Below, piece by piece: positions 16,492 to 55,716 of a stretch of DNA of 56,871 nt (positions within the stretch are counted from its first letter, which is position 1; each line of letters begins with the position of its first letter). A program made the position numbers and the translations under genes. This DNA comes from Ascoidea asiatica JCM 7603 (lineage: Eukaryota > Fungi > Ascomycota). The stretch spans positions 174,309 to 231,179 of the forward strand of contig BCKQ01000019.1 of the NCBI GenBank assembly GCA_001600695.1, in the 5' to 3' direction. Under the pieces are notes generated by a model. That model made no database searches. It had not been told where the DNA came from and saw only the letters and a program-made list of their open reading frames with translations.

Positions 16492-17688
16492 ATGCAATTA
16501 AGTTTATCTACATTAACAGTTTTGGCAACATTTCTTGTTAAAAATTCCATGGGAGAAGAATGTGCAACAGTTTATGGTCAATGTGGTGGTGCCAATTGGA
16601 CAGGTGCAACATGTTGTGCATCAGGTTCATCTTGTGTTGAATATAATGATTATTATTCTCAATGTGTAGCAGATTCAGGATCAGATTCATCTGCTGTCGT
16701 TGGAAACATTACAGAAAGTTCAACTGAAATTGCTGGTAATTTCTCTAGTCCAGCAACAGTTGTTAATAATTCATCATCTTCTGCTTATTCTTCATCTAGT
16801 GCTTTTATTTATTCATCAGAATCTGTTGAAAATACTGAAGCTGTTGCAGCTGCAACTATTTCAACTTCTAGTTCAAAAGTTTCTTCTACTTCTAGTTCCA
16901 TTGAAACAGTTTCATCTTCAACTAAAGCAACAACTGTTGAAAGCTCTAGTAGTGCTTCTTCTGCATCATCTTTAGCAGCTTCCTCTGAATCTTCAGCAGG
17001 ATCTTCAACATCTACATCTTCTAGTTCATCTAGTTCTTCAACAGCAGAAGTTATTTCAGGTGGATCATCAGGAACCGGTACTACAACTAGATATTGGGAT
17101 TGTTGTAAACCATCATGTTCATGGTCTGGTAAAGCATCAGTTGGATCACCAGTTGATGCCTGTAGTTCAGATGGTTCAACAGTTTTAGGAGTTGATGTTC
17201 AAAGTGGATGTACTGGTGGTACTGCATACATGTGTATTGATCAACAACCATGGGAAGTTAGTGATAATTTAGCATATGGTTTTGCAGCTACTTCAATTTC
17301 AGGAGGATCAGAATCTTCAATGTGTTGTTCATGTTATTTATTAACATTTACTTCAGCTGCAATTAGTGGAAAACAAATGATTGTTCAAGCAACAAATACC
17401 GGATCAGATTTAAGCACAAATCAATTCGATATTGCATTACCAGGTGGTGGACAAGGTATTTATTCAGGTTGTACTGCACAATATGGATCAAGTTATTCAT
17501 GGGGAGAACAATACGGTGGAGTTTCTTCGGAATCAGATTGTGCTAATTTACCAACTGATTTACAAGCTGGTTGTGAATTTAGATTTGGTTGGTTTGAAGG
17601 AGCTGATAATCCAACTGTTTCTTTTGAACAAGTTGTTTGTCCAACTGAAATCACAGATAAATCTGGCTGTATCAGAGATGACCAATAG
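16492..17688 (+). CDS. Secreted GH45 endo-1,4-beta-glucanase with N-terminal CBM1 and Ser/Thr linker
   Basis: Signal peptide; CBM1 YGQCGGANWTGATCC..GSSC...NDYYSQC; catalytic TTRYWDCCKPSCSW and TNTGSDL..NQFDIALPGGG. Confidence 0.97.
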   Translation: MQLSLSTLTVLATFLVKNSMGEECATVYGQCGGANWTGATCCASGSSCVEYNDYYSQCVADSGSDSSAVVGNITESSTEIAGNFSSPATVVNNSSSSAYSSSSAFIYSSESVENTEAVAAATISTSSSKVSSTSSSIETVSSSTKATTVESSSSASSASSLAASSESSAGSSTSTSSSSSSSSTAEVISGGSSGTGTTTRYWDCCKPSCSWSGKASVGSPVDACSSDGSTVLGVDVQSGCTGGTAYMCIDQQPWEVSDNLAYGFAATSISGGSESSMCCSCYLLTFTSAAISGKQMIVQATNTGSDLSTNQFDIALPGGGQGIYSGCTAQYGSSYSWGEQYGGVSSESDCANLPTDLQAGCEFRFGWFEGADNPTVSFEQVVCPTEITDKSGCIRDDQ

Positions 17689-20209: not shown

Positions 20210-23200
20210 TCATTCAGTGATATAAACTTGAGGAATACAAGTAATACCCTTTTCTTGAACTGTATAAAATGGAGTAAAAGCATCACCTTCAGTTCTCCAA
20301 GCAGATGGAGCACACCATGGGAACTTAGGTTCAAAGAAATGAAGATGACCAAAAGTATTAAATCTATCACCTCTTAAAAGTACTTTCAAAACTTTACCTT
20401 TAGTTAAATCAACTGCAATTTCATTTGGTTTTAATCCTAAATATCCAATTTCTTTATGATCTACAAATACTTTGGCTATTGGAGATTTGAAAAAAGGAAT
20501 TCTTAAAACTGTCTTTCCTGATCCCTTTAATGATTTTCTAATTTTTTCCATACAAATATTATATGTAACATCACCACCATAAAATGGTAACCCTTGTTGA
20601 GTCCAATCACCATAATATAATTCTTTTGGATATTCTACAATCTTGGAATGAAGACCTTTAATTTCAACACCAAATTTTCCCAAAATATGTAACCATTCGA
20701 TACTTTTAAAAATTATTAAATGGAATTGAATAAATTAATTCATATTTACCAGCACTAATCTCAGGTAATTTGATTTTATTAATATCAATATCAACGTAAT
20801 ATCCAGTTTTTTCAATTTTAACATCTTTACCATCCAATGAAACAATTAAACCATCTAAAGTTTCAGTTGATAATTCAGAAAATGGAACAGAAATCTCTGA
20901 ATTAATTTTGAATTTTAAAGAAATACGATGTTCGAAAAATGATTTAATTTCTTCACTTATAGTCCATGGTTGACAATAAATCCTTTTAATGGATAATCTA
21001 ATTTAGTTCTAATAATGTTTTCAATTTTTAAAACTTCTTCTTCATCTTGCCATTCTCCATCATCCAATTTAAATTCAGCTTTATCTAATAGTAATACATT
21101 GGATTCAGCTAATTCAAATGATTCAGGTTCTGGTAAAGAAACAGTTTCTTTCATAACTGGATTTTTAACCATTGAAGCATTGAAAGATTCTTTTGTTGTA
21201 GGTTTCATTCTAAATAAGAAATGACCAATTTGTGGGAAAGTCCAATAAAATTTTGTAGTTTTCTTGGTTTGATCAACATCAACTTTATCAAATTTAGAGT
21301 GAGTACCAGCCATGGTATCATAATATTGTATATCCCAACAACCTTTTAATGTGAAGATACAATTTTCTCTTCTTTGTTTATAAGAAGTATTACAAACGAA
21401 TAAGTATCTTTCATTACCTTCTTCTCTCATATTATATAAAATGGTATCTTCAATTTGAGCATATAATAAACAATCTCTATCTTGAGGATCAACATATTGA
21501 ACATCAATTTCTTTATATGGTTTTAATTTTTCATATAATTGCATTTTTGAAAACATAATTTTTTCAGAACCTTTAATTTTTAAAGGTTTTTTTAAAAGAA
21601 TACCATCTGAGATTGTTGGATCTTCACCCATTATAATAACTTTACCACCTTTATTTGAGAATTTTTGTAATCTTTCAATAGTTGTTGGTCTTAAAGTTTT
21701 ACATGAAGGTACAATTAAAACATCATAATTCATTTTTCCAACTGGAATTGAATCACCATTAGTAATATCTTCAATTTTAGTTTCTTCTGGGAATAAAGAT
21801 TCTGAGATATAATCAAAATCTAAACAACCATAAGATAACCATTTTAATAAATTATCAAAATTTCTTTGTCTTTCTTCTCTTTCAAGTTTTGAATTTTCCC
21901 ATGGACCACAACATTACCAATAACTTTCAATTGGATGAATTACACCAATTCTTACAACTGGAGAACCTCTTGTTAAAAATACATTTAATCTTGAAAAATG
22001 ATCTTCAACATATTTGAAATCTTTATACCAAGGAGATTGATAACCAAGTTGAGCAGGAAAATCTCTTTTTGCTTCACCTTTCATTGAGACCCAAGATAAA
22101 TGTGGTACTCTGAATGTGATACCAAAAGCAGCTTGCCAATCACCTTGACTTTTATAACCTTCAAATGGGAAACCCCAATTTGTAACACCATAATCTTCAG
22201 ATAAAACACCTTCTCTACCATATTGATGAGAAACAGATTGAGCTTGTTTTGCAGTATGATATTCATGTTTATCTTGTAACATATCAATTCCTGGAATTTC
22301 AAAATATTTATAAGATCTCATAGCTTCACCTAAAGCTTGAGTTTGCATAAGAAGATCTTCTTCATTCATCATATGACCAGCTAAATTAATATTATGTTTT
22401 GCACACCATTCAGAAATTGTTTTAATAAAAGCATTATTAAATCTTGTACAAAAATGATCATGATAATGATAACGAGCTTTTGAAAGTAAATTATTTAATA
22501 AATTCCAAAATAATTCAGGAATTTTATCAATAATATTATAATTATAAGTTTTAAAAAAAGTTTTATTTAAATCTGTTGTCCATGGTAAAAAACCTTGTTC
22601 AATTGTATGAGATTTTTCAAAAGCAACTTTATGAGAAAATTGAGGTTCATCAGTGAAAATGGTTTTAACAGTATCACCAAATTGTTTACCTAAAAGTTTA
22701 AAATATTTTTCATGAGTTGATTTTAAAAATTCATTAATTGCATCTTTATTTAAAGTATCAACATAAGTTGAATCATTATAAAAAGAACTTGGAGCAGCTA
22801 ATTCTAAATATGCAAACCAAATTTTTGTTGCATTATCATTCTCAACACTTTCTCTTAAATTTTTTAAATCAATTGAAGATATATTTATTGGATAAAATTT
22901 ATAATTTAAAATTGTACCATCTTGATTTAAAGTAACTTTATAAATACCAATTAAAGAACCATTTTCTTGTCTTACTGCACCTAAACCAAAAGCATTAGAA
23001 ATTGAATCTGGAGTTTTTTTCACCATATGGAGTTATAGTAAATAATAAATTTTTTTGTCTATAATCTGGAAATTTTTTAGGTATAACACCACCACATGAA
23101 CCACTTGGCCAACGATCTTCATCATATAAATAAGTTAACATTTCATTATCATTACCAGCTTTATTACATTTTTTAACTAAACTCATAAATTCATCACCCA

Positions 23201-23408
23201 TATATTCAGTATCTAAACCAGTTCTTGAATGTATATGAAACCCACCAAAACCCATATTTTTTAAATCTTCAATTTCTTTTAATAATTGATTTTCATTTAA
23301 TTTATTATTCCATGACCATAATGGAGCACCTCTATATTCTTTTGGAGGATTATGAAAATTTTCTAAATCCAAAGGTTCATGAGAATGAGGATAAAATGGA
23401 GTAGTCAT
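20210..23408 (-). pseudogene. Disrupted ~1065-aa intracellular glycoside hydrolase, GH106 (alpha-L-rhamnosidase)-like
   Basis: Four track ORFs join into one protein (PPKEYRGAPLWSWN, GFGGFHIHSRTGL, LYDEDRWPSG, IFTDEP, PGIDML, GEAKRDFP). Breaks: extra base in the run at 23014-23020, in-frame TAA at 21914-21916 (ESYW*CCGP), and a frameshift near 20980 (restored frame ...YCQPW...). Confidence 0.82.
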
Positions 23409-35355: not shown

Positions 35356-36540
35356 TTAAGCAGTACAAGCAGAACCTGTTGCAGATTCAGTAACTGTAAC
35401 TGTAATAAATGACATTGGATTATTAAAATGACCAAATTTACCATATTTACTAAAATTACTACCATAACTTTCACTTGGCATTGGAATTGCAAGATATGTT
35501 GAACCTGCAGAAATTAAAGTAGTTGCAGAAGCAGTTTCAGTTTCAATAATTGATGAATCTAAAGAAGCTGAGCCATAACTTAAAGTACTTACACTCATTG
35601 TTCCAAAAACACTAGAAGAACTTTCCGAAGAAGAAACTTCTGATGAAGAAGTTGCAACTGCAGCAACTTCAACTTGTTCTGAAGTAGAAGATGATGAAAC
35701 AATTTTAGTAGTTGATGATGATGAGGCTAAAATACTTCCTGAGCTTTGAGAAACTTCTGAGGTTAAAGAACTTGAAGAACTTGATGAATTATAAACAGCA
35801 GGACCTGGAATTGTATAATTATAAAGTTTTGGATAATAAATATCTACAAAAATTCCTGGATCAGTATTTTTATAAGCACCTGGAAATTTAACACCTTCTG
35901 GAATTGCAGAACCATTACTAGAAATTTTTAAATTTGTACAAGATGGATAAAATTGTCCAGAATTTAAATGAGATGCATTATGTAAAGCTAAAATTTCATG
36001 TCTCATTAAATAATTACCAGATACAATATCTGAAGGAATAGTAACAGTCCATGAATTATTATTTGCCATTAAAACATCTGAAGCCCAATAACCTTCAACA
36101 TATTCAGTTGCATTACTAATTAAACCAGCTTCATCAATTTTAAACCATGATAATTCAGATGGTGTCATTTCTGAACAATTACCATTACAATTTGCTAAAT
36201 ATGTTATAACTGGACCTCTATGAGATGTACCCCATTGAGTCCAATAAAGTCCAACATCTTCACCTGCATTTACTGGAGCAACTAAAGTTGAAGGTTCTGC
36301 ACCTTTATTACAAACAATATCAACTAAAGAAACATCTTCAACTGGTCCATTAGTTGCATTAAAAAAAGACCAGACAACTCTTTCTGGAATTGGATTTCTT
36401 GTTGGATCAGAAAATGGATTTGAACCAGGATACCAAACATCACCAATTTTAATATCAGTTAAAAATCCATGAGATTTAACTAATGAAGGTAATGACAATG
36501 TTGAAATTAATGAAATTAAAGATTTTGTTAATAATTTCAT
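35356..36540 (-). CDS. Secreted AA9 lytic polysaccharide monooxygenase (copy 1) with Ser/Thr tail
   Basis: Signal peptide then His1 (residue 24, HGF), DIVCNKGA, SHRGPVITYLA, WFKIDEAG, GNYLMRHEILALH, QFYPSC, YTIPGP. Confidence 0.96.
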   Translation of the reverse strand: MKLLTKSLISLISTLSLPSLVKSHGFLTDIKIGDVWYPGSNPFSDPTRNPIPERVVWSFFNATNGPVEDVSLVDIVCNKGAEPSTLVAPVNAGEDVGLYWTQWGTSHRGPVITYLANCNGNCSEMTPSELSWFKIDEAGLISNATEYVEGYWASDVLMANNNSWTVTIPSDIVSGNYLMRHEILALHNASHLNSGQFYPSCTNLKISSNGSAIPEGVKFPGAYKNTDPGIFVDIYYPKLYNYTIPGPAVYNSSSSSSSLTSEVSQSSGSILASSSSTTKIVSSSSTSEQVEVAAVATSSSEVSSSESSSSVFGTMSVSTLSYGSASLDSSIIETETASATTLISAGSTYLAIPMPSESYGSNFSKYGKFGHFNNPMSFITVTVTESATGSACTA

Positions 36541-38967: not shown

Positions 38968-40081
38968 ATGTTTTTCAATTCAAATTTTAATTTTTCTTCA
39001 ATTTTAATTATTTTTTTATTAAATTTTTTTTTCTTAAATTCTGTTCAATCCCATGGATATTTAACTGATATTCAAATTGGTGATATTTGGTATCCTGGTT
39101 CAAATCCATATGTTGATGTTTATTTAAAACCAGAAAAAATAGTTTGGCCATTTTATGAAGCTGGTAATGGTCCAGTTGAAGATGTTTCTTTAGTTGATAT
39201 TGTTTGTAATAAAGGTGCAGAACCTTCAAATTTAGTTGCTCCTGTAAATGCAGGTGAAGAAATTAATCTTTTTTGGACTGAATGGTTAGATTCTCATAGA
39301 GGTCCAGTTATAACATATTTAGCAAATTGTAATGGTAATTGTTCAGAAATGACACCATCTAATTTATCATGGTTTAAAATTGATGAAGCTGGTTTATTAA
39401 ATGATAATGATTCTTATCCTTATGGATATTGGGCTTCTGATGCTTTGAAAGCTAATAATAATTCATGGAGTATAACTATCCCTTCAGATATAATTTCTGG
39501 TAATTATTTAATGAGACATGAAATTTTAGCTTTACATAATGCAACTTATTTAAATTCTGGACAATTTTATCCATCTTGTACAAATTTAAAAATTTCTAGT
39601 AATGGTTCTGCAACTCCAGAAGGTGTTAAATTTCCAGGTGCTTATAAAAATACTGATCCAGGAATTTTTGTAGATATTTATTATCCAAAACTTTATAATT
39701 ATACAATTCCAGGTCCTGCTGTTTATAATTCATCAAGTTCTTCAAGTTCTTTAACCTCAGAAGTTTCTCAAAGCTCAGGAAGTATTTTAGCCTCATCATC
39801 ATCATCATCATCATCATCTTTTACTATATCTTCATCAGTTACAGAACTAGTTGAAGTTGCAGCAGTTACTTCTTCTACTAAATCTTTTACTTCTTTTATT
39901 TCTTCAAGTTTAACATCTTCTTTAGCATCACCATCATCAGTTAATTTTGGAACTTTATCAACAGAATCAGTCAATTATGGTTCTTTTTCATCCAATTCTA
40001 ATGTATATTCCAACAAAACTGAACTGGAATCATTTTCAATTCCAACTCCAATGCCAAGTGATGAATTTAATAATAATACCC

Positions 40082-40122
<41 letters not shown>

Positions 40123-40215
40123 TATAAATTTAATTTTGGACCAATTGGTAATTATACATCATTAGTAACCATTACTGTTACTGAAAAAGTAACTGAATAT
40201 GCATGTACTGTTTGA
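38968..40215 (+). CDS. Secreted AA9 lytic polysaccharide monooxygenase (copy 2) with Ser/Thr tail
   Basis: Signal peptide then His1 (residue 29, HGY); same copper-brace His/His/Tyr motifs as copy 1. Confidence 0.96.
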
Positions 40216-42786: not shown

Positions 42787-45480
42787 ATGAAATCATTATT
42801 AACCAATGAATCAATAATCATTGGTTCAAATCCATTAAATCAATGTTCAGATTATAATAATTTTTTAAAATTAATTGTTTTTGGTTCTGGAAATTTAATT
42901 TCAATTTTTAATCCATTTAAAATTAAAAATGGTATTTTAAAAACTTTAAAATCTCATAAAGATAAAATTATAAATTTAAAATTTTTACCAAATTCAAATT
43001 TCTTAATCTCTACAAGTGTTGATTCATCTATTAAAATTTGGAAATATAATAAAAACTCTAATAACAATAATGATAACAATAATGATAATGATAATGATAA
43101 TGATATAAGTTGGGAATTATTTCAAACTATTGAAATTAAAGAAAGTAATAACGATAATAATAATGAAAATGATAATAAAAATTCTTCAATTTTATCTTTA
43201 TCAACTACAAATCATCAATTAAATTTAAATTCAAATCCAAATAATATTAATAATAATAATCAATTATCTTTTGTAATTTCAAATTCAAATGGTAATATAT
43301 ATATATATACATTTAATAAATTTGAAAATGAATTTAAAAATATAAAAAAATTTAAAATAACCGCTGATAATAATAATAATAATAATTTTTTATTTTATCC
43401 ATTATCTTTATTATTATTAAATTTTTTTAATAATGATTATATTTTAATAATTTCTGGTACAAATAATTTTATTTATTTTTATTCTTTTACAATTTTAAAT
43501 AATTTAAAAATTAATAATTTTAATTATAATTTTAAATTATCTGGTCATGAAGATTGGATTAAATCTTTATCAATCAAGAAATTAAATAATAACAACAATA
43601 ACAACAATAACAACAATAACTCTTTTGGTGATTATTATTTAGCTTCTGGTTCTCAAGATAAATATATAAGAATTTGGAATATAAATATTTCAAATAATTC
43701 ATCAAATAATTCATCAATAGATTCATCAACTGATTCAATAATCAATAGTAAATTATTGAATAATAAAATTTATAAAATTAAATTAATTTCAAATTTAAAT
43801 ATAATTTATAAAATTAATTTTGATTCTTTAATTATTGGTAATGATGATTGGATTTCTTCATTAACTTGGAATCCAAATTATTTAAATTTAAATTTATTAT
43901 CAACTTCAAATGATGGTAATTTAATAATTTGGAAAATTGATAATAAAACTAAAATTTGGTATTCAATTTCTATACTTGGTAATTTATTAAATAATTTTAA
44001 AGGTTCAAATTCTATCTTTGGTTCTTCAAATGATTTCTTAAATTCTTTTTGGATTAATAATAATAATAATAATAATGATTATATTTTAACAAATACAAAA
44101 AATGGTGCTTTTAAATCTTGGATTAATGATAATACAAAAAATGACTTTAATTGGAAAGAATATTATTCATTATCTGGTTCTATAAAAGAAATTACTGATT
44201 TATCTTGGTCTGAATCAAATTATTTATTATCAACTTCTTTAGATAAAACAACAAGATTATATTCAAAATTAGCCGCTGATACAAATAATAATAATAATAC
44301 AAATAACTGGTATGAATTTTCAAGACCACAAATTCATGGTTATGAAATGATATGTATAAAATCTTTAAATAATAATCAATTCATAAGCGCCGGTGATGAA
44401 AAAATTTTAAGAGTTTTTAATAAACCAAAATCAATTAAAAATTTATTAAATAATTTATCAACTTCCACTGATATTGATAATAACCAAGATAATAATAATG
44501 ATAATGATGATGATGAAATTGAAAATGTTTCTGTACCAACTTTAGGTTTATCAAATAAAATTGAAAAAATTTTAAATGAAAATGGTGAAGAAATTAATTT
44601 AAATTCAATTGAATTAAATTCTTTAATTAATCAACCTAATGAAAATCATTTAGAAAAATTTACTTTATGGATTGAAAATGAAAAATTATATGGTCATGGT
44701 TTTGAAATTATAAATTTAGATATTTCAAATAATAAAAAATTTTTAATAACTTCATGTAAATCAAATAATTTAAATCATTCAAAATTAATTTTATATCAAA
44801 TTTTAAATAATAACAAAATTTTTAAAAAAATTAATTCATTACCTGAATTAAAATTTCATAATTTAACTGTAACTTCATTAAAATTCTCAATTGATGATTT
44901 ATTCATATTAGCAGTTTCAAGAGATAGAAAATTTTCAATTTGGGAATTTAATAATAATTTTATTAATCCAAATTTTATCCTAAAAACTTTTAATGAAAAA
45001 GCTCATTCAAAAATTATTTGGGATTGTTGTTGGATTCCATCAATAAAATTTGGTTATTTTTTTATAACTTGTTCAAGAGATAAATCAATAAAATTATGGA
45101 ATTTTTTACCAAATAATATTATAAATTATAAATTAATTACTCAAATTAAAAATTTTAATTCTTCAGTAACTTCAATTGATATTTTAAAAGATTTAATAAA
45201 TTATTCAATTTCTTTAATTTCTATTGGTTTAGAAAATGGTGATATTTATATATATTCAATAAATTTAAAAAATTTAAAAAATTCAGAAAATTCAGAAAAT
45301 ATTGAATTTAAATTAATTGAAAAATTAAATTATGATTTAACTCCAGATGATAGAATTAATTCAATTAATTGGAGTTATAAATGTAAAAATGAAAATAAAT
45401 ATATGTTAGCTGTTGGAAGTTCTGATAATTCTATAAGAATTTTTAGTTTCAAACTTGAAAATCTTTTAAAAGTTTTATAA
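42787..45480 (+). CDS. ELP2: Elongator complex WD40 subunit 2
   Basis: GHEDWIKSL, LASGSQDKYIRIW, STSLDKTTRL, EFSRPQIHGYEM, VPTLGLSNK, EKLYGHGFEI. Confidence 0.95.
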   Translation: MKSLLTNESIIIGSNPLNQCSDYNNFLKLIVFGSGNLISIFNPFKIKNGILKTLKSHKDKIINLKFLPNSNFLISTSVDSSIKIWKYNKNSNNNNDNNNDNDNDNDISWELFQTIEIKESNNDNNNENDNKNSSILSLSTTNHQLNLNSNPNNINNNNQLSFVISNSNGNIYIYTFNKFENEFKNIKKFKITADNNNNNNFLFYPLSLLLLNFFNNDYILIISGTNNFIYFYSFTILNNLKINNFNYNFKLSGHEDWIKSLSIKKLNNNNNNNNNNNNSFGDYYLASGSQDKYIRIWNINISNNSSNNSSIDSSTDSIINSKLLNNKIYKIKLISNLNIIYKINFDSLIIGNDDWISSLTWNPNYLNLNLLSTSNDGNLIIWKIDNKTKIWYSISILGNLLNNFKGSNSIFGSSNDFLNSFWINNNNNNNDYILTNTKNGAFKSWINDNTKNDFNWKEYYSLSGSIKEITDLSWSESNYLLSTSLDKTTRLYSKLAADTNNNNNTNNWYEFSRPQIHGYEMICIKSLNNNQFISAGDEKILRVFNKPKSIKNLLNNLSTSTDIDNNQDNNNDNDDDEIENVSVPTLGLSNKIEKILNENGEEINLNSIELNSLINQPNENHLEKFTLWIENEKLYGHGFEIINLDISNNKKFLITSCKSNNLNHSKLILYQILNNNKIFKKINSLPELKFHNLTVTSLKFSIDDLFILAVSRDRKFSIWEFNNNFINPNFILKTFNEKAHSKIIWDCCWIPSIKFGYFFITCSRDKSIKLWNFLPNNIINYKLITQIKNFNSSVTSIDILKDLINYSISLISIGLENGDIYIYSINLKNLKNSENSENIEFKLIEKLNYDLTPDDRINSINWSYKCKNENKYMLAVGSSDNSIRIFSFKLENLLKVL

Positions 45481-45747: not shown

Positions 45748-47622
45748 TTAAATTTCATAAGTAACACCTTCATATCTTTCAACAAATTTTTTAGGAATTT
45801 CAGCATACTTTGATCTTATAAAATCAGCAAAACCTTTACCTAAACCATCTAATCTACTTGATGAAGATATACCTCTACCTAAGATACCATAGACAACAAA
45901 ATGAACAGCTTTAATTAATGGCATTTCAACTCTTTCAATATAAAACCAATCTTCCCAATCTTCACCAATAAACTCTTTCATTTTATCTTTTGTTAAATAA
46001 GTTTTTAACCATTCATATTCATCATCTTCATGAACAAATAAACCAATATTAACATTACTACCTTTATCACCAGATCTTGCTAAAACAATTTTTTCTAATT
46101 CAGTCTCAATAGTTGGACCAAATGTTTTTAATTCAACTGGATTTGCAGTTTCATAATTTTCTCTAATACCAAATTCAGAAAATTTTGTAACTCTATCAGC
46201 ATCAAAAGTTTCAGTTGAATTATCTATTGGACTTAAAATTGTAACTTTTTCATCAAGATCTTTTTGACCTATTAAACATGGAAAATAAGCATTATATTTT
46301 GTTGGATGAAAAGTTCTTTGATCCATTGAAGTATGCATACCAGAATAATGTTGCATACCATATTTCATAAAACCATAAATTAAAGATGTTGCAACTTTAA
46401 AATCTTTTGTTTGAGCAAAAATTCTACAAAATGCTGTACCTCTATTTTGACCAGCTGGATTTTTATCAGATTTACCAAAAATTTGAAAATCTAAAACATC
46501 AAATTTATCATAAGTATTTTCTTCTTTTAAAGCATGAATTAATTGTTTTTTTAAGAAATTAAATTTAAATTCAGAATTTGTACCAGTTGCACAAAATGTT
46601 GTTTCACATTGATAACCACCTTGATAAAATAAAGATAATTTAGTTGTTGGAGGTGGAGGTAAACCTTTAACACCAGTTATTTTAACTCTATTTTTTGCAA
46701 CTTGTTGAACTTTAACATCATGAAGATCAGCAATAACATCACTATTAAGATATTTTGTACCTTGTAATTCATATAATAATTGACATCTAATATTATCAAC
46801 ATTTACTAAACCATTAAGAGATTCATGTTTTGTAATAATACAAGTACCATCACTTGCAACTTCAGCAATTGGATAACCTAAATCAATTAATTTTTCAATT
46901 GGTTTATATCTTTCAAAATCACAAAAATTAGCACCAGTACTATAACCAGAACATTCAATTAAATGACCTGCAATTAAAGAACCAGCTAATTTATCATAAT
47001 CATCAACTTTCCAACCATGCCACCAAGCAGATAAACCAATAATTGGGGAAGCATCAGCAATTCTACCACATATTATAATATCAGCACCATTTTCAAGACC
47101 TTTGATAATACCTCTTGCACCAAGATAAGCATTACAACTAACAATATCAACATTATCATAATCTTTTAAAAATCTAGTTGTAATATCACTATATTTAATA
47201 TCTGGATTTGCAGAATCTAAATGTTTTAAATGATATTCAGGTTTTATAAAATCTTTTGCTTTTTCAACTAAATTATCACCAGAAACATAAGCAACTTTTA
47301 AATTATAATTTTTTGCAACAACTTCTTCATGAATTCTTTCAGCTAAACCTTTTGCATTTTGAGCTCCACCATCTAAAACAACTTTAATTCTTTTTTCATT
47401 AATAACTGATAAAGTTTTTAAAATTGATAATTCTGCATTTTTTTCCCAACCTGGATGTTTACCATTTTTATAAGCTTCTGCATTACTTGCAATATTAACT
47501 TCTGCTAAATAATCACCATATAAAGCATCAACTTTTCCTTCAGTGGCTTGTCTATACATATTAATAGCTGTATCATTCATTGCACCTGCGCAATCAGCAA
47601 TAATAATTGGACGTTTACCCAT
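45748..47622 (-). CDS. AtuA / DUF1446 (acyclic terpene utilisation) family protein
   Basis: GDYLAEVN, NAYLGARGI..GL..GADIIICGRIADAS, AGHLIECSGY.TG.NF, QLLYELQG..YLNSDV, ARSGDKG..NIG, DGLGKGFADF. Confidence 0.93.
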   Translation of the reverse strand: MGKRPIIIADCAGAMNDTAINMYRQATEGKVDALYGDYLAEVNIASNAEAYKNGKHPGWEKNAELSILKTLSVINEKRIKVVLDGGAQNAKGLAERIHEEVVAKNYNLKVAYVSGDNLVEKAKDFIKPEYHLKHLDSANPDIKYSDITTRFLKDYDNVDIVSCNAYLGARGIIKGLENGADIIICGRIADASPIIGLSAWWHGWKVDDYDKLAGSLIAGHLIECSGYSTGANFCDFERYKPIEKLIDLGYPIAEVASDGTCIITKHESLNGLVNVDNIRCQLLYELQGTKYLNSDVIADLHDVKVQQVAKNRVKITGVKGLPPPPTTKLSLFYQGGYQCETTFCATGTNSEFKFNFLKKQLIHALKEENTYDKFDVLDFQIFGKSDKNPAGQNRGTAFCRIFAQTKDFKVATSLIYGFMKYGMQHYSGMHTSMDQRTFHPTKYNAYFPCLIGQKDLDEKVTILSPIDNSTETFDADRVTKFSEFGIRENYETANPVELKTFGPTIETELEKIVLARSGDKGSNVNIGLFVHEDDEYEWLKTYLTKDKMKEFIGEDWEDWFYIERVEMPLIKAVHFVVYGILGRGISSSSRLDGLGKGFADFIRSKYAEIPKKFVERYEGVTYEI

Positions 47623-47951
47623 TTTTTAAATTGAATTGTATTTGTTATTTGTGTTTGATTGTTTGTTTGATAATTGAATATATATTTGTATTCAATTGTA
47701 TTTGTATTTGTATTTGTAATTGTAATTGTAATTAAATTTATATTTGTAATTATTTAATAATTATTTCTTAATAAATAAAACTAGAAATTGAAAATATATT
47801 TATAAAAGGAGGATAAAAGATTATTTATATATTAAATAACTCATTTCTTAAAAAACAAGCTGCAAATTCATGAAATTAAGAAATTCAGTGTTAAAATTGA
47901 AATTTTGAATAAAATTACTCCAAACAAAAGCCAATCAAAACCAAAATAACA

Positions 47952-48337
47952 TTATGTCAGATATCTTATGTCAGAACTCTTACCACAGATATATTATGTC
48001 AGATATTATGTCAGATATTATGTCAGATATTATGTCAGATATTATTTAAAATATAAATAGCTTTTATTACGTAATATTTCCTCACGTAATCCACCTGAGA
48101 ACAATGAAATTTTTCTATTTCTGGGGTAACAGGATAAGGTTTTATCCTAAAATCCCGAGATTTACAGGCAGCCTAAACCTTAAATGTCGGGTGTTTAAAA
48201 ACCACACACCCATCGGCATTACGCCGTGCATTCCGGTTCCCTAGAATTCTCTCCGCAATAAAAAAGCACGTGTTGTCTTACGTGAGATGGCTGACGGGGG
48301 TTCATTACCCTCGTATTACGTGAGAATTCTTACATCA
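47952..48337. promoter_or_regulatory. Dense array of bZIP (Yap/CRE/PAR-like) sites in the AtuA / CoA-transferase divergent promoter
   Basis: TTATGTCA x6 (47952, 47966, 47994, 48006, 48018, 48030); palindrome TATTACGTAATA 48065-48076; TCACGTAA 48082; TTACGTGA 48278 and 48316; TTACATCA 48330. Confidence 0.75.
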
Positions 48338-48589
48338 GACCATTAAGGAACTGTTTGTTGTCAAAAGAATAAAAGAAATGTTGCAAGAAATTTTCAATTT
48401 CAACTTTTTATATAAATATTAATACTTTTGCTCTATGTTTTTTGGATGGGTTCTTTTGTTTGTTCAATTAAAGAATAAATAATTTTGATTGTATTTCTAC
48501 TTTCAATTATAATTCTAGTTTTTTATTAATTTTTTTGGTTTTTTTCAAAAATTCATATATTTTCACTATATAACTTCTTTTTAATTAAA

Positions 48590-50299
48590 ATGTCTTTTGA
48601 TAATTCTGAGTATACTGTTGCTAAAGAATCTAAAAGGATTCTTTCTGAAATCTTAAATGATGACAGACTTTTAGTTCCTGATTATATTAAACAATTTTCT
48701 AGTAATGTTGAATTCATTTCCCCTTCCGGTAATGAAAAACCTTTTTTACCAACTTCTTTAAAAATGAGTGAATCTTCTGCTTCTTTATGGGGGTTTTTAT
48801 CATGTTTTGCAAATGGTATTATAAAAGATAGATATAATCCAGAAAATAATCAAATTGCAACAATTGATACTGATTTATCTACATTATATTTAAATTCAAT
48901 TCCTTTTATTCAATTTAATGGAAATAATTTAGCTTCTTCAGAGTTAACAGAAAGAAATATAAGATACGATTTACATCAAAATCAATCTTCACCTTACAGA
49001 TTTCTTTCAACAAATATTTATCAAACAAAAGATAATAAATATTTTCATTTACATGGTTCAATAAATCCAACTCCAACTTTAGAAATGATAAATCTACCAC
49101 CTTTTAATGATGAACTTTCAAAAAAATCTCAAAGAGAAATTGCAAATTTTTATAATAATCATCTTAAAAAAAATTTTGATAGTGATTATTTAGATATTTA
49201 TTCAAATGAAAGATTTAAACAACCTGGTACAATTTGTTATAAATATAATGATTTTATTAAAACTGATTATGGTAAATTAATTGATAAAGAACCAATTTAT
49301 AATTTATATAAAGTTAATCCTGAATTACCTTCAATTTCATGGCCAAAAGTTACAAAAGGTACTGGAAGACCTTTAGAAGGTATTAAAGTTATTGATATTT
49401 CAAGAGTTGTTGCAGCTCCTCAAATTACAAAAATCTTAGCTTCTTTAGGTGCAACTATTATAAGAATTTCATGTTCTACAAATCCAGATTTATCTGTTTT
49501 AATGTATGATGGTAATTTAGGTAAAAGAGATATTTCTTTAAATTTAAAATCAAAAGAAGGTAAAAAAACTTTAGATAATTTAATTCAAACCGCTGATGTT
49601 TTTCTTGATGGTTATAGACCAAATGCTTTAGCTAAATTAGGATTTTCTCAAGATTATTTACAATTTATTGCTAAACAAAGAAATAAAGGTATGATAGTTG
49701 CAAGAGAAAATTGTTATGGTTATGTTGGAAGTTTAAAAAATAGAGCAGGTTGGCAACAAATTGCAGATGCTATATCTGGTGTTGCTTATGAACATGGTAA
49801 ATTTTTAGATTTAGATGAACCTATTTTACCTTTATTACCAAATGCAGATTTTCAAGTTGCTTTAATTGGGGTTGCAGGTATATTAAATGCTTTATATAAA
49901 AGATCAAAAGAAGGTGGTTCTTATAATCTTGATGTTTCATTAGTTCAATATGATTTATTTTTCTTAAAATTAGGTATTTTACCAATTGAAGAACAACTTA
50001 GATTAAAACAAGATTATAAAACAAATGAAAATTCAAGTATTTCTAATGTTTTTAATTTAAGATTTTTTGATGATATGGCAACTTTATCAACAAAAGTTAC
50101 TAAATATTTATTTTCAATGGAAAATACAAGAAAAATTATTTTAAATCCTAATAATTATTCAACTGCAGATTCAAAATGGGGTGTAGAAAATGAAAAAATA
50201 AAATTTATTAAACCTCCTTTAAGTTTTACAGATATTCAATTATCTTATGATATTGGTACTTGTCAAATGAATTCTTATGAACCTGAATGGCCCTTTTAA
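48590..50299 (+). CDS. Family III (CaiB/BaiF) CoA-transferase, long fungal type
   Basis: YFHLHGSINP, RPLEGIKVIDISRVVAAP, NLGKRDISLNL, ADVFLDGYRP, RAGWQQIADA, LPNADF (probable catalytic Asp). Confidence 0.92.
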   Translation: MSFDNSEYTVAKESKRILSEILNDDRLLVPDYIKQFSSNVEFISPSGNEKPFLPTSLKMSESSASLWGFLSCFANGIIKDRYNPENNQIATIDTDLSTLYLNSIPFIQFNGNNLASSELTERNIRYDLHQNQSSPYRFLSTNIYQTKDNKYFHLHGSINPTPTLEMINLPPFNDELSKKSQREIANFYNNHLKKNFDSDYLDIYSNERFKQPGTICYKYNDFIKTDYGKLIDKEPIYNLYKVNPELPSISWPKVTKGTGRPLEGIKVIDISRVVAAPQITKILASLGATIIRISCSTNPDLSVLMYDGNLGKRDISLNLKSKEGKKTLDNLIQTADVFLDGYRPNALAKLGFSQDYLQFIAKQRNKGMIVARENCYGYVGSLKNRAGWQQIADAISGVAYEHGKFLDLDEPILPLLPNADFQVALIGVAGILNALYKRSKEGGSYNLDVSLVQYDLFFLKLGILPIEEQLRLKQDYKTNENSSISNVFNLRFFDDMATLSTKVTKYLFSMENTRKIILNPNNYSTADSKWGVENEKIKFIKPPLSFTDIQLSYDIGTCQMNSYEPEWPF

Positions 50300-50613
50300 T
50301 GTTTAAATGATTAATTTTTTTTTTTTTTTTTTGATTTATTTTTCTTGGTTTTAAGTCTCGAAAATTTATAAAAGATAAAAAGTATTCTTAATTCATAAGT
50401 TGATTAATAATATATATATTTATCAAAAAATAATAAACATTTTTTACATATTTTGGCATATATAAGTTGTCGTAATGAAATTACATAAAAAAAAATCACT
50501 TTTAGAAGAAATTGCAAAAAAATACATAAGTTGAAAAATATTAATAACAATAACTGTATAATATTTAAAAAATCAAAAAAATGGAATTCAACTCTTTTGA
50601 AAATCATTGAAAA

Positions 50614-52449
50614 TCATTGTGTAACACTTTCAGTTAATGGATCAATAGTATTTATACTTGAAATAAATGCAAGCATATTTAATAGATTATCATTCATTTC
50701 TAATGAATTTAAAACACTTTTTTCTGAATATGAGATTAAATTTGAATTTTGAGGGAAAATATTTGGAAAATTAATAGTAAATTTTTGATGAATTTTCCAA
50801 TTATCAATATTTTGAATATTTGAATTGAATAAAATTAAATAAATTTCATTTGAATAATTTGAATATAAAATATCATTAAAATCTTTTATGAAAAAAGCTC
50901 CTTCACTAGTTTCAATTAAAATATTTTTGAATAGATTATCTAATAGATTATTTAAAAGATTATTATTAAGATAATTTGAATTATTTATTTCATTTATATT
51001 ATTTATATTATTTATATTATTTATATTATTTATATTATTTATACTATTTATATCCATAATATTAGTAGAAGATGAGAATTTCATAATAATTGAATTTCTA
51101 ATTTCAGGCCATGGAATAAAATTTATCATTGGATTATAAGCAAAAGGAATATTTAATAAATGTTTATTAATTAAATTTAATTGTAAAGCAGTTGGAATAA
51201 AATTTTTTGGTTTAATTAAATTTAAATTGGAAGTACTTGGATTAAGTAAAAATATTAAAATTGATTTAAACCACATTTTAGAATTTAAAGTTAATGAAAT
51301 AAATTTCATTATTGGAGAAACTATTTCAAATAATTCTAATTGAGTTAAAATATGTCTTTGAATGATGAAAGAATCTGAATGAAGTTGATATTTTAAAGAA
51401 TTTTTTAATTTATTAAAAAAAAATAAAAAATTTTCTGTTTGAGTTCTATTATTTTTTGAAATTAATTCATTTTCATTAATTGAATTTTTAATTTCAATAT
51501 TATATGAAGTTTTTGAAATATCATTTTTTAAAAATTTAGATTGATTTTTATTTAATTTTGATATTAAATTCAAAGGATTTTTTTCAACTTGAATTTTTGT
51601 TAAATCAGTATCATTATCATGAGATATTAAATTAGAAATAGCTAAAGGACTATTACTTGAACTATGAATATTTGTAGATAAATTTAAATTTGATTTTGAT
51701 GAAAAAGATTGATTTGAATATTTTTCTTTTGAAATTTGATTATTACCATTATTTATATCTTGAATTGATTTATTATTATTATTATTATCAATTGAAATTG
51801 GAGTTTGATTATATTTTTCAATTTCTTTTTCATTCTCTTTTTCAATTTTTTCTTTGTTCTCTTGACAAATTTCTTTTCTTATTTCATTTCTTATTTCATT
51901 TTTTATCTCATTCTTTATCTGATTTTTAATTTCATTATCATAACTATTTTTAATTTGATTTTTACTATAGTTACTTAATTTATCATTATCATCAAGATTC
52001 AATAAAGAATTTGATAAATTTTTAGAATCTTTGATTATTCTAATCAAATCATCAAAGTTATTATTTAAATCAAATAATAAATCCTTATAAGTATTATTTT
52101 CTTCAATTAATTCTAAGATTGTATTTTGATTATCATTGTTGTCATTATTATCATTATTGGAATCATTATCATTGTCATTACTATCATCACTATCATTATT
52201 TTGCTTTTTAAATGAGTTTTCAATGCTTGTATTATTATTTAAAAGTGATTTCCCATGAGTTGATTTCATTAAAATCTCTATCTTTTTTTCAAGTTGTTTT
52301 ATCTTTATTGATTTCTTTTCTCTGTATTTTTTTTGTGATATTCTATTTTGTTTCCTTTTTTTCTCAAGAGCAGATAAGGATTGACTATTACTACTCTTGT
52401 TAAGATTATTATTGTCATTACTATTACTATTACTTTTGTCTAACTCCAT
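50614..52449 (-). CDS. bZIP transcription factor with a C-terminal DUF3425-like region
   Basis: Basic region EKKRKQNRISQKKYREKK plus zipper IKQLEKKIEIL; C-terminal PTALQL...INFIPWPEIRNSII...NWKI..F...FP. Confidence 0.85.
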   Translation of the reverse strand: MELDKSNSNSNDNNNLNKSSNSQSLSALEKKRKQNRISQKKYREKKSIKIKQLEKKIEILMKSTHGKSLLNNNTSIENSFKKQNNDSDDSNDNDNDSNNDNNDNNDNQNTILELIEENNTYKDLLFDLNNNFDDLIRIIKDSKNLSNSLLNLDDNDKLSNYSKNQIKNSYDNEIKNQIKNEIKNEIRNEIRKEICQENKEKIEKENEKEIEKYNQTPISIDNNNNNKSIQDINNGNNQISKEKYSNQSFSSKSNLNLSTNIHSSSNSPLAISNLISHDNDTDLTKIQVEKNPLNLISKLNKNQSKFLKNDISKTSYNIEIKNSINENELISKNNRTQTENFLFFFNKLKNSLKYQLHSDSFIIQRHILTQLELFEIVSPIMKFISLTLNSKMWFKSILIFLLNPSTSNLNLIKPKNFIPTALQLNLINKHLLNIPFAYNPMINFIPWPEIRNSIIMKFSSSTNIMDINSINNINNINNINNINNINEINNSNYLNNNLLNNLLDNLFKNILIETSEGAFFIKDFNDILYSNYSNEIYLILFNSNIQNIDNWKIHQKFTINFPNIFPQNSNLISYSEKSVLNSLEMNDNLLNMLAFISSINTIDPLTESVTQ

Positions 52450-52959: not shown

Positions 52960-54458
52960 CTAAATATTACCAAAGTCATCATGGCTTGTAGCAACAATAT
53001 TTATAGGTAATTTACATGAAAATACATTACCATTTAATATTTCTCTTCCAAGATATAATTTACCTTTTTTATCTTCATATATTTTTTCATATAAAACTTT
53101 ATCTACATTGACTTCACTAATGTCATTATTGCCATTTTCTTTCATTATTTCTTGATCTTGAGTATCATTTTCAGTTTCATTATTATCATTATAATTTTCA
53201 TCCTCATCTTCATCGTCGTAATAATCTTCAGGATCTAATTTATTTTCAATAATTATAAATTTCAAATTTAAAAAATATTGAATTTTAAAAAAATTACTCT
53301 TAAATTGTGGTGATAAATGAAAAGGTATATTGAAATTTAATTGTAATTTATCATAATTTAAAACTGAAACTCTTTTACAACTTATATTACAAGAAAATTC
53401 ATTATAATAATCTTCATCATTAATCATTAATTTTTCAATTTTTATCATTTCTTCTTTTTCTTTTTCAAGTTTTTCAAGTTTTTCTTTTTTTTTTTGATTT
53501 TTTTTTTCAATATCACTTTTAATAATATTTTCATTATTAATAATGGATGATGAATTTCCTATCAAATTATCATCTTCTTTATTATCATTTGTACTTTTAT
53601 TTTGATCTTTTAAAATATTTTTCTTCTCAGTTTTACTTTTATTATTATCTTCATTATTATCTTCATTCTGGTCATTATGGTCATTATGGTCATTATCATT
53701 ATCATTATCAGTATCAATATCACTATCATCACTATCACTGTCATTATTATTATTATTGAATTCAACTAAATATTTGTAATTATAATTTTCAAAAATATCA
53801 AATTCTAAAATTATTCCACTAACTTTATAAAAATTTTTATTAATTGAATTATTTAAATTATTGAAATTAAAAATTAAATTAACTTGATCACCAATTTCAT
53901 AATATGGTTTTGAATACATTAAATGACAAATAAATTTTTTATTATATTTAATTAAAAATTGATTTTGAAATGGAAATTTAACAATACTTTCATAATTTAT
54001 ATTATCTTTACTTTCTTTATTAGTATTTGTATTATTAATATTACTTTTATTTAATAATTTATTTCTTTCCTCTGTATTTTCAATATCATCTTTAATCTCA
54101 TCTTTTATATCATTTTCAATATCATTTTCAATATCATTTTTATTATAATTATTGATTTTTTCACTTGTCATTATTAAACTTTTATCTTTAATTAACATTT
54201 CCATTTTTTTAATAAAATTTTTTTTTAAATTTAAATTTGAATTATTTTCAAAATTATTATTTTTTGTTAAAATTTTATTATTTAATAATTTAAATTTATT
54301 TTGTTGTAATAAATAATTTGAAATTGATTTAAAATTTGATCTTAAATTAAATTTATAATTTTGTTTATCATTTAAATCTAAAATTAAATAATTATTTTTA
54401 TTTAATTTTTTTAAATTATTAAAAAATTCTAATTTAAAATTTATTATTGGTTTAATTA

Positions 54459-54502
<44 letters not shown>

Positions 54503-54810
54503 GGAAAAATTTTTAATGGAAAAAATAAATTTAATTTTATTGGTTTTTTAATTGTTGAATTAATTAATAATTTTTCAACATTTAAAATTAAATTATAATT
54601 AATTTTTATAAAATTACCTTTATAATTACAAGGTAATGAATTTGGAATTTTAAATTTAAAATAATATTGTTTTATATCCCCAGGTTTTAAATTTATTTCA
54701 ATAAATAATAAACATTGTTCAGTTGTGAAAAAGGGAATGATATTATTAATATTCAGTAAAATTTTATTTGATTCAGTATTTGAGTTATTATTATTAATAA
54801 AATTTGGATC

Positions 54811-54856
<46 letters not shown>

Positions 54857-55532
54857 GTATTGATGTTATTGATATTATTATTATTATTATTATAATTATA
54901 ATTATTATTTATAAATTGATTAGAATTATTATTAGTTTGAAATTCAGCAATATCACCAACATTAGTATCTAAAAAATTTGAAATATTTGTTGTTAAATTA
55001 TTTAAAAAAGAAGATTGATTAATTAAATTTATATTTGATAAATCAAGTGATTGAATTGCAGCAAATTTTCCAGCAATTATTGAATTTTTTTTAATTTTAA
55101 TAAATTTTGAATCATCTATAACATTATTATCAATAATTGCATAACCAAATAATTGTATATTACCAATTAATAAAGTTTCTCCATTATCTATTATATCATT
55201 ACTATTATTATTATTATTATTATTATTATTGTTATTATTATTGGAATTATTATTAGAATTACTATTAGTAATATCATTATCATTATCTTTAAGTTGATCC
55301 AGAAATAAAGATCTTGTTGAATTTGATAATTGTTGAGATAATTTTCTACCAAAACCAGTCCATGAATTTGGATCTAAGAAAGAATTAGAAGAAACTGAGG
55401 AAGTATGAGATTGAGATTGAGATTGAGATTGAGATTGAGATTGAGAATCAGATTGTGATTGAAGACTAACAGTTGATCTTATTGAAGATACAGAATTAGA
55501 ATGATTTCTATTAAGTGCAGGAGTATTAAGCA

Positions 55533-55563
<31 letters not shown>

Positions 55564-55716
55564 ACTTGTTTTTTTTTTGATTAATTTTTTACCTAAATGA
55601 CGAAATCTTATAATTGCAGAAACATCTTCACCAGCATAAAATGGATTTGATTCATAAACTATTTCAACTCGTACATTTGGAGTTAATAATTGGTTACATA
55701 TAAAATGAGTAATCAT
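52960..55716 (-). CDS. RGP1: Rgp1 subunit of the Ric1-Rgp1 Ypt6 exchange factor
   Basis: VRVEIVYESNPFYAGE..SAIIRFRHLG, PFFTTEQCLLF, LPCNYKG, SKPYYEIGD, PQFKSNFF, FSCKLPI. Confidence 0.85.

Follow-up and report, generated by a model that had tools for sequence, protein, structure and literature searches.

A conserved pair of AtuA/DUF1446 and long family III CoA-transferase genes beside a bZIP-DUF3425 gene in Ascoidea asiatica: a candidate catabolic module for branched hydroxy-diacids

The window analysed here is a stretch of 56,871 nucleotides from Ascoidea asiatica JCM 7603 (contig BCKQ01000019.1, positions 174,309 to 231,179 of the forward strand). Within it we considered three adjacent genes, encoding an AtuA/DUF1446 protein, a long family III coenzyme A (CoA)-transferase and a bZIP-DUF3425 transcription factor, which an original prediction made from the sequence alone had proposed to be a self-regulated catabolic module. 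The genes and their surroundings, in window positions, are the following.

45748-47622, reverse strand: AtuA/DUF1446 gene, 624 amino acids (aa), PF07287 and PF23544
47623-48589, no strand: divergent promoter spacer, 967 bp
48590-50299, forward strand: long family III CoA-transferase gene, 569 aa, PF02515
50614-52449, reverse strand: bZIP-DUF3425 transcription factor gene, 611 aa, Asn-rich
42787-45480, forward strand: ELP2, flanking, outside the module (homology match, E 4e-152)
52960-55716, reverse strand: RGP1, flanking, outside the module (PF08737)

All three open reading frames (ORFs) of the module are intact at these coordinates. The divergent arrangement of the enzyme genes around a spacer of about 970 bp, the ELP2 and RGP1 flanks and the bZIP-DUF3425-like gene following the pair had all been predicted and were borne out. 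This last gene is convergent with the transferase gene and has its own upstream region of 510 bp, facing RGP1. Profile searches of the 20.3-Mb genome returned one match per family for AtuA, the PF02515 transferase and DUF3425. There are no CTG codons in the three ORFs, and therefore the CUG-code question leaves them unaffected.

Concerning the AtuA protein, it matches PF07287 over the full model (E 6e-149, 497 bits against a cut-off of 22.8) and PF23544 with 69 bits (cut-off 27). PDB sequence searches with the protein or with its fungal profile gave no match, and only a fold search found one. The predicted structure (predicted local distance difference test, pLDDT, 94) has a single strong PDB match, citramalate lyase (Foldseek E 6e-20), solved with ADP and pyruvate (9EVF) and with AMPPNP and citramalate (9ERQ). 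Against the CmlA chain (9EVF_A/9ERQ_A) 419 residues were aligned with Z 26.8 and a root-mean-square deviation of 4.1. The C-terminal domain, folded alone, matched CmlB (9EVF_B/9ERQ_B) with 100 of 105 residues aligned, ranking first in Foldseek (E 4e-3) and with Z 8.3, the next match being at 4.9; this resemblance went undetected by profile-to-single-sequence comparison alone. The two parts of the gene are placed as follows.

46210-47619, reverse strand: CmlA-like part of AtuA, residues 2-471 (Z 26.8, motifs in common with CmlA)
45796-46110, reverse strand: CmlB/DUF4387-like C-terminal domain of AtuA, residues 505-609 (Z 8.3)

Residues G186, R187 and D190, G219, H220, E223 and C224, and Y284 and E285 are invariant in 113 AtuA homologues, as are R516, S517, D519 and K520 in the C-terminal domain. 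The motifs G186-R187-D190, G219-H220-E223-C224, Y284-E285 and R516-S517 have counterparts in CmlAB, so that GR-x-x-D, G-[HK]-x-x-EC, YE and an R-[S]-based C-terminal motif are common to both systems, which are also both members of PF07287. Because the model matches both CmlAB subunits, AtuA is predicted to be a single-chain fusion of CmlA and CmlB, and on the strength of this model it is probably an acetate-releasing C-C lyase.

Citramalate lyase converts citramalate into pyruvate and acetate (bioRxiv 10.64898/2026.01.16.699985), and CmlA is the DUF1446 product of the enterobacterial methylaspartate operon. The two systems differ in that Cml has two subunits and is found with glutamate mutase, methylaspartate lyase and mesaconase, whereas the window AtuA is fused, eukaryotic and found with a family III CoA-transferase. 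A second comparison is offered by anaerobic naphthalene degradation, where the AtuA-like ThnQS, next to the CoA-transferase ThnP, converts a tertiary-hydroxy glutaryl-type CoA ester into a 3-oxoacyl-CoA, partly according to results unpublished there (PMC12016498). This likeness is one of description, the sequences not having been compared; moreover ThnQS has two subunits in a 20-gene operon, and ThnP is annotated as an acetyl-CoA-hydrolase-type transferase carrying out an intramolecular transfer (PMC12016498). By analogy, the theme common to CmlAB, ThnQS and AtuA may be a retro-aldol reaction in which a tertiary alcohol loses a carboxymethyl arm. The chemistry of AtuA, which had been called poorly defined, is better defined than that.

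The transferase matches PF02515 with E 3e-35 (122 bits, cut-off 23.3) and falls far below every NCBIfam equivalog cut-off (Frc, CaiB, SUGCT-type, Mct), with 43-79 bits versus 413-750. In an alignment of its C-terminal half with Frc, YfdE and SUGCT, the catalytic Asp conserved in these and in CaiB is retained (Asp420, codon 49847-49849); the transferase differs from all of them by an extra N-terminal 250 aa, which gave no library match. Both D420 and E61 are invariant in 57 aligned rows, and a weak internal match (E 0.007) aligns Glu61 with Asp420; the N-terminal region is possibly, as a lead only, a degenerate second copy forming a single-chain pseudo-dimer. The top PDB sequence matches of the transferase include human succinate-hydroxymethylglutarate CoA-transferase.

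The pair formed by AtuA and the long transferase recurs in other yeasts, in Neurospora, in many filamentous fungi and in Pseudonocardiaceae. Babjeviella, Saccharomycopsis crataegensis and two yeast-like contigs have the genes head-to-head, Myxozyma has them tail-to-tail, and in Neurospora crassa AtuA (NCU07901) and the transferase (presumably NCU07899, by inference of the number) flank the bZIP-DUF3425 gene NCU07900. Among metagenome loci with enough flank, duplicates removed, the genes were linked in 15 of 23 cases within the AtuA clade of the window and in 1 of 11 for more distant paralogues; since these loci are not independent, the counts are descriptive. Linkage was also found in 6 of 11 assembly look-ups, and in Pseudonocardiaceae the long CoA-transferase directly follows AtuA in 6 of 9 loci. 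The linkage expected for all three genes was recovered across fungi for the enzyme pair, and the bZIP-DUF3425 gene stands beside it in few lineages.

In both gene trees (the one of AtuA being a quick tree) the window enzymes branch with other Saccharomycotina, and for this reason a recent horizontal transfer was rejected; in the transferase tree the window sequence branches with Ascoidea rubescens. Intron-containing relatives were searched exon by exon and the exon pieces concatenated for both trees, which makes these rows approximate. For the yeasts, the branching in the two trees is largely in agreement, with a Mantel correlation of 0.62 that partly reflects a common species history. These patterns point to vertical descent with frequent loss for both enzymes, and the joint inheritance for which gene trees had been suggested is supported, AtuA and the transferase appearing as an old, conserved and co-inherited unit.

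Some peculiarities of these loci should be mentioned. In Babjeviella the transferase and its downstream neighbour are duplicated and flank AtuA on both sides. The pair adjoins the casein kinase II beta gene in one filamentous-type contig and also, there together with GET1, in Saccharomycopsis-like yeasts, hinting at an old chromosomal position of the pair. The A. rubescens transferase has a long branch; no AtuA gene was seen within 10 kb of it, and a group of Zn-cluster, thiolase, CoA-transferase and hydrolase genes resembling those for 3-oxoadipate is close by. The AtuA copies of the bdelloid rotifer Adineta, with no adjacent transferase, nest within a yeast-rich clade at 56-57% identity, suggesting acquisition from a yeast-like fungus.

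For the fungal DUF1446 proteins more than 4,000 homologues were counted at E<1e-20. The closest bacterial members, which are actinobacterial and 30-34% identical to the window AtuA, are encoded either in operons with carboxylase, hydratase and acyl-CoA dehydrogenase genes or immediately upstream of a long CoA-transferase gene; no annotated 3-hydroxy-3-methylglutaryl (HMG)-CoA lyase was present within 9 kb of those in carboxylase operons. These proteins and those of the Pseudomonas Atu/Liu systems have the same Pfam domains as the window AtuA; the difference is in the accompanying enzymes. Six-frame profile searches of the one assembly returned ACC1 as the sole match of the carboxyltransferase family, with no geranyl-CoA or methylcrotonyl-CoA carboxylase, and found two thiolases but no acyl-CoA dehydrogenase and hence no citronellyl-CoA dehydrogenase, no methylglutaconyl-CoA-type (isohexenylglutaconyl-CoA) hydratase, no HMG-CoA lyase and no SCOT-type transferase. 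The carboxylate-hydrate-cleave route of the bacterial AtuA operons cannot therefore be assembled here, and the branch would have to arrive already carboxylated and hydroxylated; the substrate probably enters as a ready hydroxylated diacid. In addition, two thiolases without HMG-CoA lyase or SCOT would suit a route ending in a 3-oxoacyl-CoA, not in a free oxo-acid.

The original prediction had also considered the use of acyclic terpenes (citronellol or geraniol) in the Pseudomonas sense, a reading suggested by the family name. Some filamentous fungi and Myxozyma have Baeyer-Villiger-type monooxygenase, esterase, short-chain dehydrogenase/reductase (SDR) and aldehyde dehydrogenase genes beside the pair, and a linalool dehydratase-like neighbour was seen once, so that a terpenoid-derived diacid formed upstream is possible in those fungi. 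However, with ACC1 as the sole carboxyltransferase and the acyl-CoA dehydrogenase, hydratase, HMG-CoA lyase and SCOT not found, the Pseudomonas route is very improbable in this yeast, and a Verticillium AtuA knockout grew like the wild type on citronellol medium in a tolerance test (PMC13399572). The terpene part of the prediction was thus not sustained.

3-Hydroxy-3-methylglutarate is the simplest candidate substrate. Plants ester-link this acid to lignans, flavonoids and saponins. Elsewhere in fungi the pair is accompanied by esterases, Baeyer-Villiger-type monooxygenases, SDR, aldehyde dehydrogenase and transporters, and these enzymes, judged by their families, would release or make diacids. 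Siderophore breakdown, raised by TRI12-like transporters, found no support.

Our best model, to which we assign a probability of roughly one half, is that a tertiary-hydroxy diacid, once activated by the transferase, is split by AtuA into acetate and a 3-oxoacyl-CoA. The module would break down, in two steps, a branched dicarboxylic acid which arrives ready-made and carries a tertiary beta-hydroxyl, of the 3-hydroxy-3-alkylglutarate type, with 3-hydroxy-3-methylglutarate or a cyclic analogue as prototype. The transferase, assigned to its family by profile and presumed to act on such a substrate, would use Asp420 to move CoA from succinyl-CoA or acetyl-CoA to one carboxyl of the diacid. AtuA would then bind ATP and activate the carboxyl left free, probably by converting it into an acyl phosphate, as we infer from the ligands in the PDB titles. 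A retro-aldol cut of the C-C bond beside the tertiary hydroxyl would give acetate and the 3-oxoacyl-CoA; here the fold comes from the structural match and the chemistry would be that of the homologues. The thiolases of the genome could complete the breakdown. Since a tertiary alcohol blocks beta-oxidation, the module would lift this block, and the neighbouring bZIP-DUF3425 protein has probably been recruited to activate the shared promoter in response to a ligand. That the transferase activates an acid and AtuA acts on the CoA ester had been predicted, and this order fits the modelled fold and the literature evidence.

The order of the two steps could also be the reverse, AtuA cleaving a tertiary hydroxy acid in its free form (citramalate, a benzyl- or alkylmalate, an acid of the citrate type or HMG) and the transferase activating the oxo-acid product or recycling CoA. 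The sole solved homologue acts indeed on free citramalate, and, as no SCOT was found, acetoacetate or a similar product would depend on a different transferase. We nevertheless consider this order unlikely: the window AtuA is nearer to the actinobacterial AtuAs of acyl-CoA operons (31-35% identity) than to CmlA (13-20%), and the substrate of the AtuA-like ThnQS is a CoA ester.

Several points weigh against the model of a CoA-ester-cleaving catabolic module. The identity of AtuA to CmlA and CmlB is low (13-15%), a common fold does not settle its reaction, and Cml acts on a free acid without CoA. The transferase has only weak PDB sequence matches (E 1e-19 to 1e-17), whose specificities are mixed, and the absences in the genome come from six-frame searches of a single assembly. 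The partners are not always together: in the flanks read, AtuA stands without the transferase in Tortispora and Adineta, and the transferase without AtuA in A. rubescens, Lophium and one other yeast. Without compartmentation, HMG-CoA cleavage would be in competition with sterol synthesis; 45 of 120 AtuA homologues end in a tripeptide like peroxisomal targeting signal 1 (PTS1), strictly so in 12, fitting peroxisomal acyl-CoA metabolism, but the window AtuA has no PTS1 at its C-terminus. Finally, a Verticillium AtuA, of a subfamily not compared with that of the window, is reported to have a mitochondrial role and no citronellol phenotype (PMC13399572).

This last case raises the possibility of a non-enzymatic mitochondrial role, since VdAtuA3 binds the 24-kDa subunit of complex I and affects respiration and virulence (PMC13399572); alternatively the pair might detoxify or repair an internal metabolite such as excess HMG or citramalate, and the window cluster has no transporter. 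We regard such roles as quite unlikely, because patchy retention, the CoA-transferase pairing from bacteria to yeasts and the transporter, esterase and oxidoreductase neighbours of other species look catabolic, and the acidic, Arg and His residues invariant in the 113 homologues are enzyme-like.

Concerning the regulator, its Pfam scores are borderline because of Asn-rich inserts (about 27.0-28 bits for DUF3425, cut-off 27.1; bZIP_1 E 5e-5, below cut-off), and its family is backed by Atlas matches at 0.92 and by one full-length bZIP-DUF3425 homologue (E 3e-21), on a 3-kb contig without gene context. The C-terminal region used as query returned no homologue, which is silent on shorter or longer relatives. 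The basic region (N35-x7-R43) is followed by a zipper, with DUF3425 at the C-terminus, and carries the Gln and the aromatic residue which we take to be those of Yap/PAP1-type proteins reading TTACGTAA. The spacer holds ten TTAYGTVA octamers versus 0.5 in shuffles, for a pattern picked by eye, and four TTACGT(A/G)A sites versus 0.05. They are distributed as follows.

47952-48045, forward strand: 12-bp minisatellite with six TTATGTCA octamers
48067-48323, no strand: four TTACGT(A/G)A sites (48067, 48082, 48278, 48316), a Yap/PAP1-like element

Close TTACGTAA pairs number 19 genome-wide versus 2 in the control and lie mostly before housekeeping genes, so that the spacer sites were rejected as cluster-specific evidence. 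TTACGTAA/TTAYGTAA octamers are found throughout the genome as closely spaced pairs or runs, often at intervals of 12-13 bp, and look like a general promoter element. The spacers of relatives share no motif, an apparent CGG richness having given no common dyad.

A DUF3425 gene near the pair was found in 3 of about 12 lineages, the window excluded (Sordariaceae, Myxozyma and one further fungus), with a chance of roughly 3e-5 to 6e-3 if 10-60 DUF3425 copies per genome are assumed. The pair had no such gene nearby in Babjeviella, in Saccharomycopsis, in two further yeast contigs or in most filamentous loci. The linked factors have differing basic-region types and cannot be called clear orthologues; between the window factor and NCU07900 the match is confined to the zipper, and the Myxozyma factor is, weakly, the closest linked one. 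The Neurospora locus, for which no characterisation was found in the literature searched, has the same three gene families adjacent, but with the factor between the enzymes and of another basic-region type; a knockout of NCU07900, strain FGSC 11446, exists. As most pair loci lack a factor and the linked ones are not clear orthologues, repeated recruitment of bZIP-DUF3425 genes seems likelier than one ancestral trio.

It is conceivable, and compatible with the enzymatic model, that the bZIP gene is a chance neighbour and that a general TTACGTAA-binding factor, or else some unlinked regulator, acts on the promoter, a case we hold to be a serious one though short of even odds. The many loci without a DUF3425 gene, the different basic-region types, the TTACGTAA pairs before housekeeping genes and about 12 other bZIP matches in the genome are in its favour, and bZIP-like octamer sites were not found in the spacers of relatives or in the factor's own upstream region. 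Against it stand the position of the factor as the sole DUF3425 gene of the genome, the linkage in 3 of about 12 lineages and the weak affinity of the Myxozyma factor. Control of the enzyme pair by the neighbouring bZIP-DUF3425 protein, judged from sequence, is plausible and somewhat favoured.

Fungal DUF1446 proteins are widespread, without an assigned reaction, and one fungal AtuA with no known enzyme activity was recently proposed as an antifungal target (PMC13399572). In a literature search of incomplete coverage no description of the fungal AtuA and transferase pair was found, and the module is apparently real, old and undescribed. The structural link to CmlAB, together with the genetic link to a transferase subfamily, gives a short assay list for DUF1446 and would provide a first concrete role for the long family III transferases and for DUF3425. 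In its widest form our proposal is of an undescribed eukaryotic pathway for 3-hydroxy-3-methylglutarate or related plant branched diacids, with a single-chain ATP-using acetate lyase in place of HMG-CoA lyase and SCOT, and with bZIP-DUF3425 proteins as repeatedly recruited ligand-sensing regulators. This we advance as a tentative and rather doubtful idea.

Elsewhere in the window there are two AA9 lytic polysaccharide monooxygenase genes (35356-36540, reverse strand, and 38968-40215, forward strand), unusual for a budding yeast. In pieces they are about 50% identical to a Neurospora AA9 adjoining its AtuA/transferase locus; Neurospora being the one other locus with an AA9, this adjacency was treated as coincidence. 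A secreted protein encoded at 16492-17688 (forward strand) appears by eye to combine CBM1 with a GH45 endoglucanase-like domain. Four consecutive ORFs at 20210-23408 (reverse strand) look by eye like the fragments of a single large glycoside hydrolase of bacterial type, similar to GH106 rhamnosidases and broken or frameshifted.

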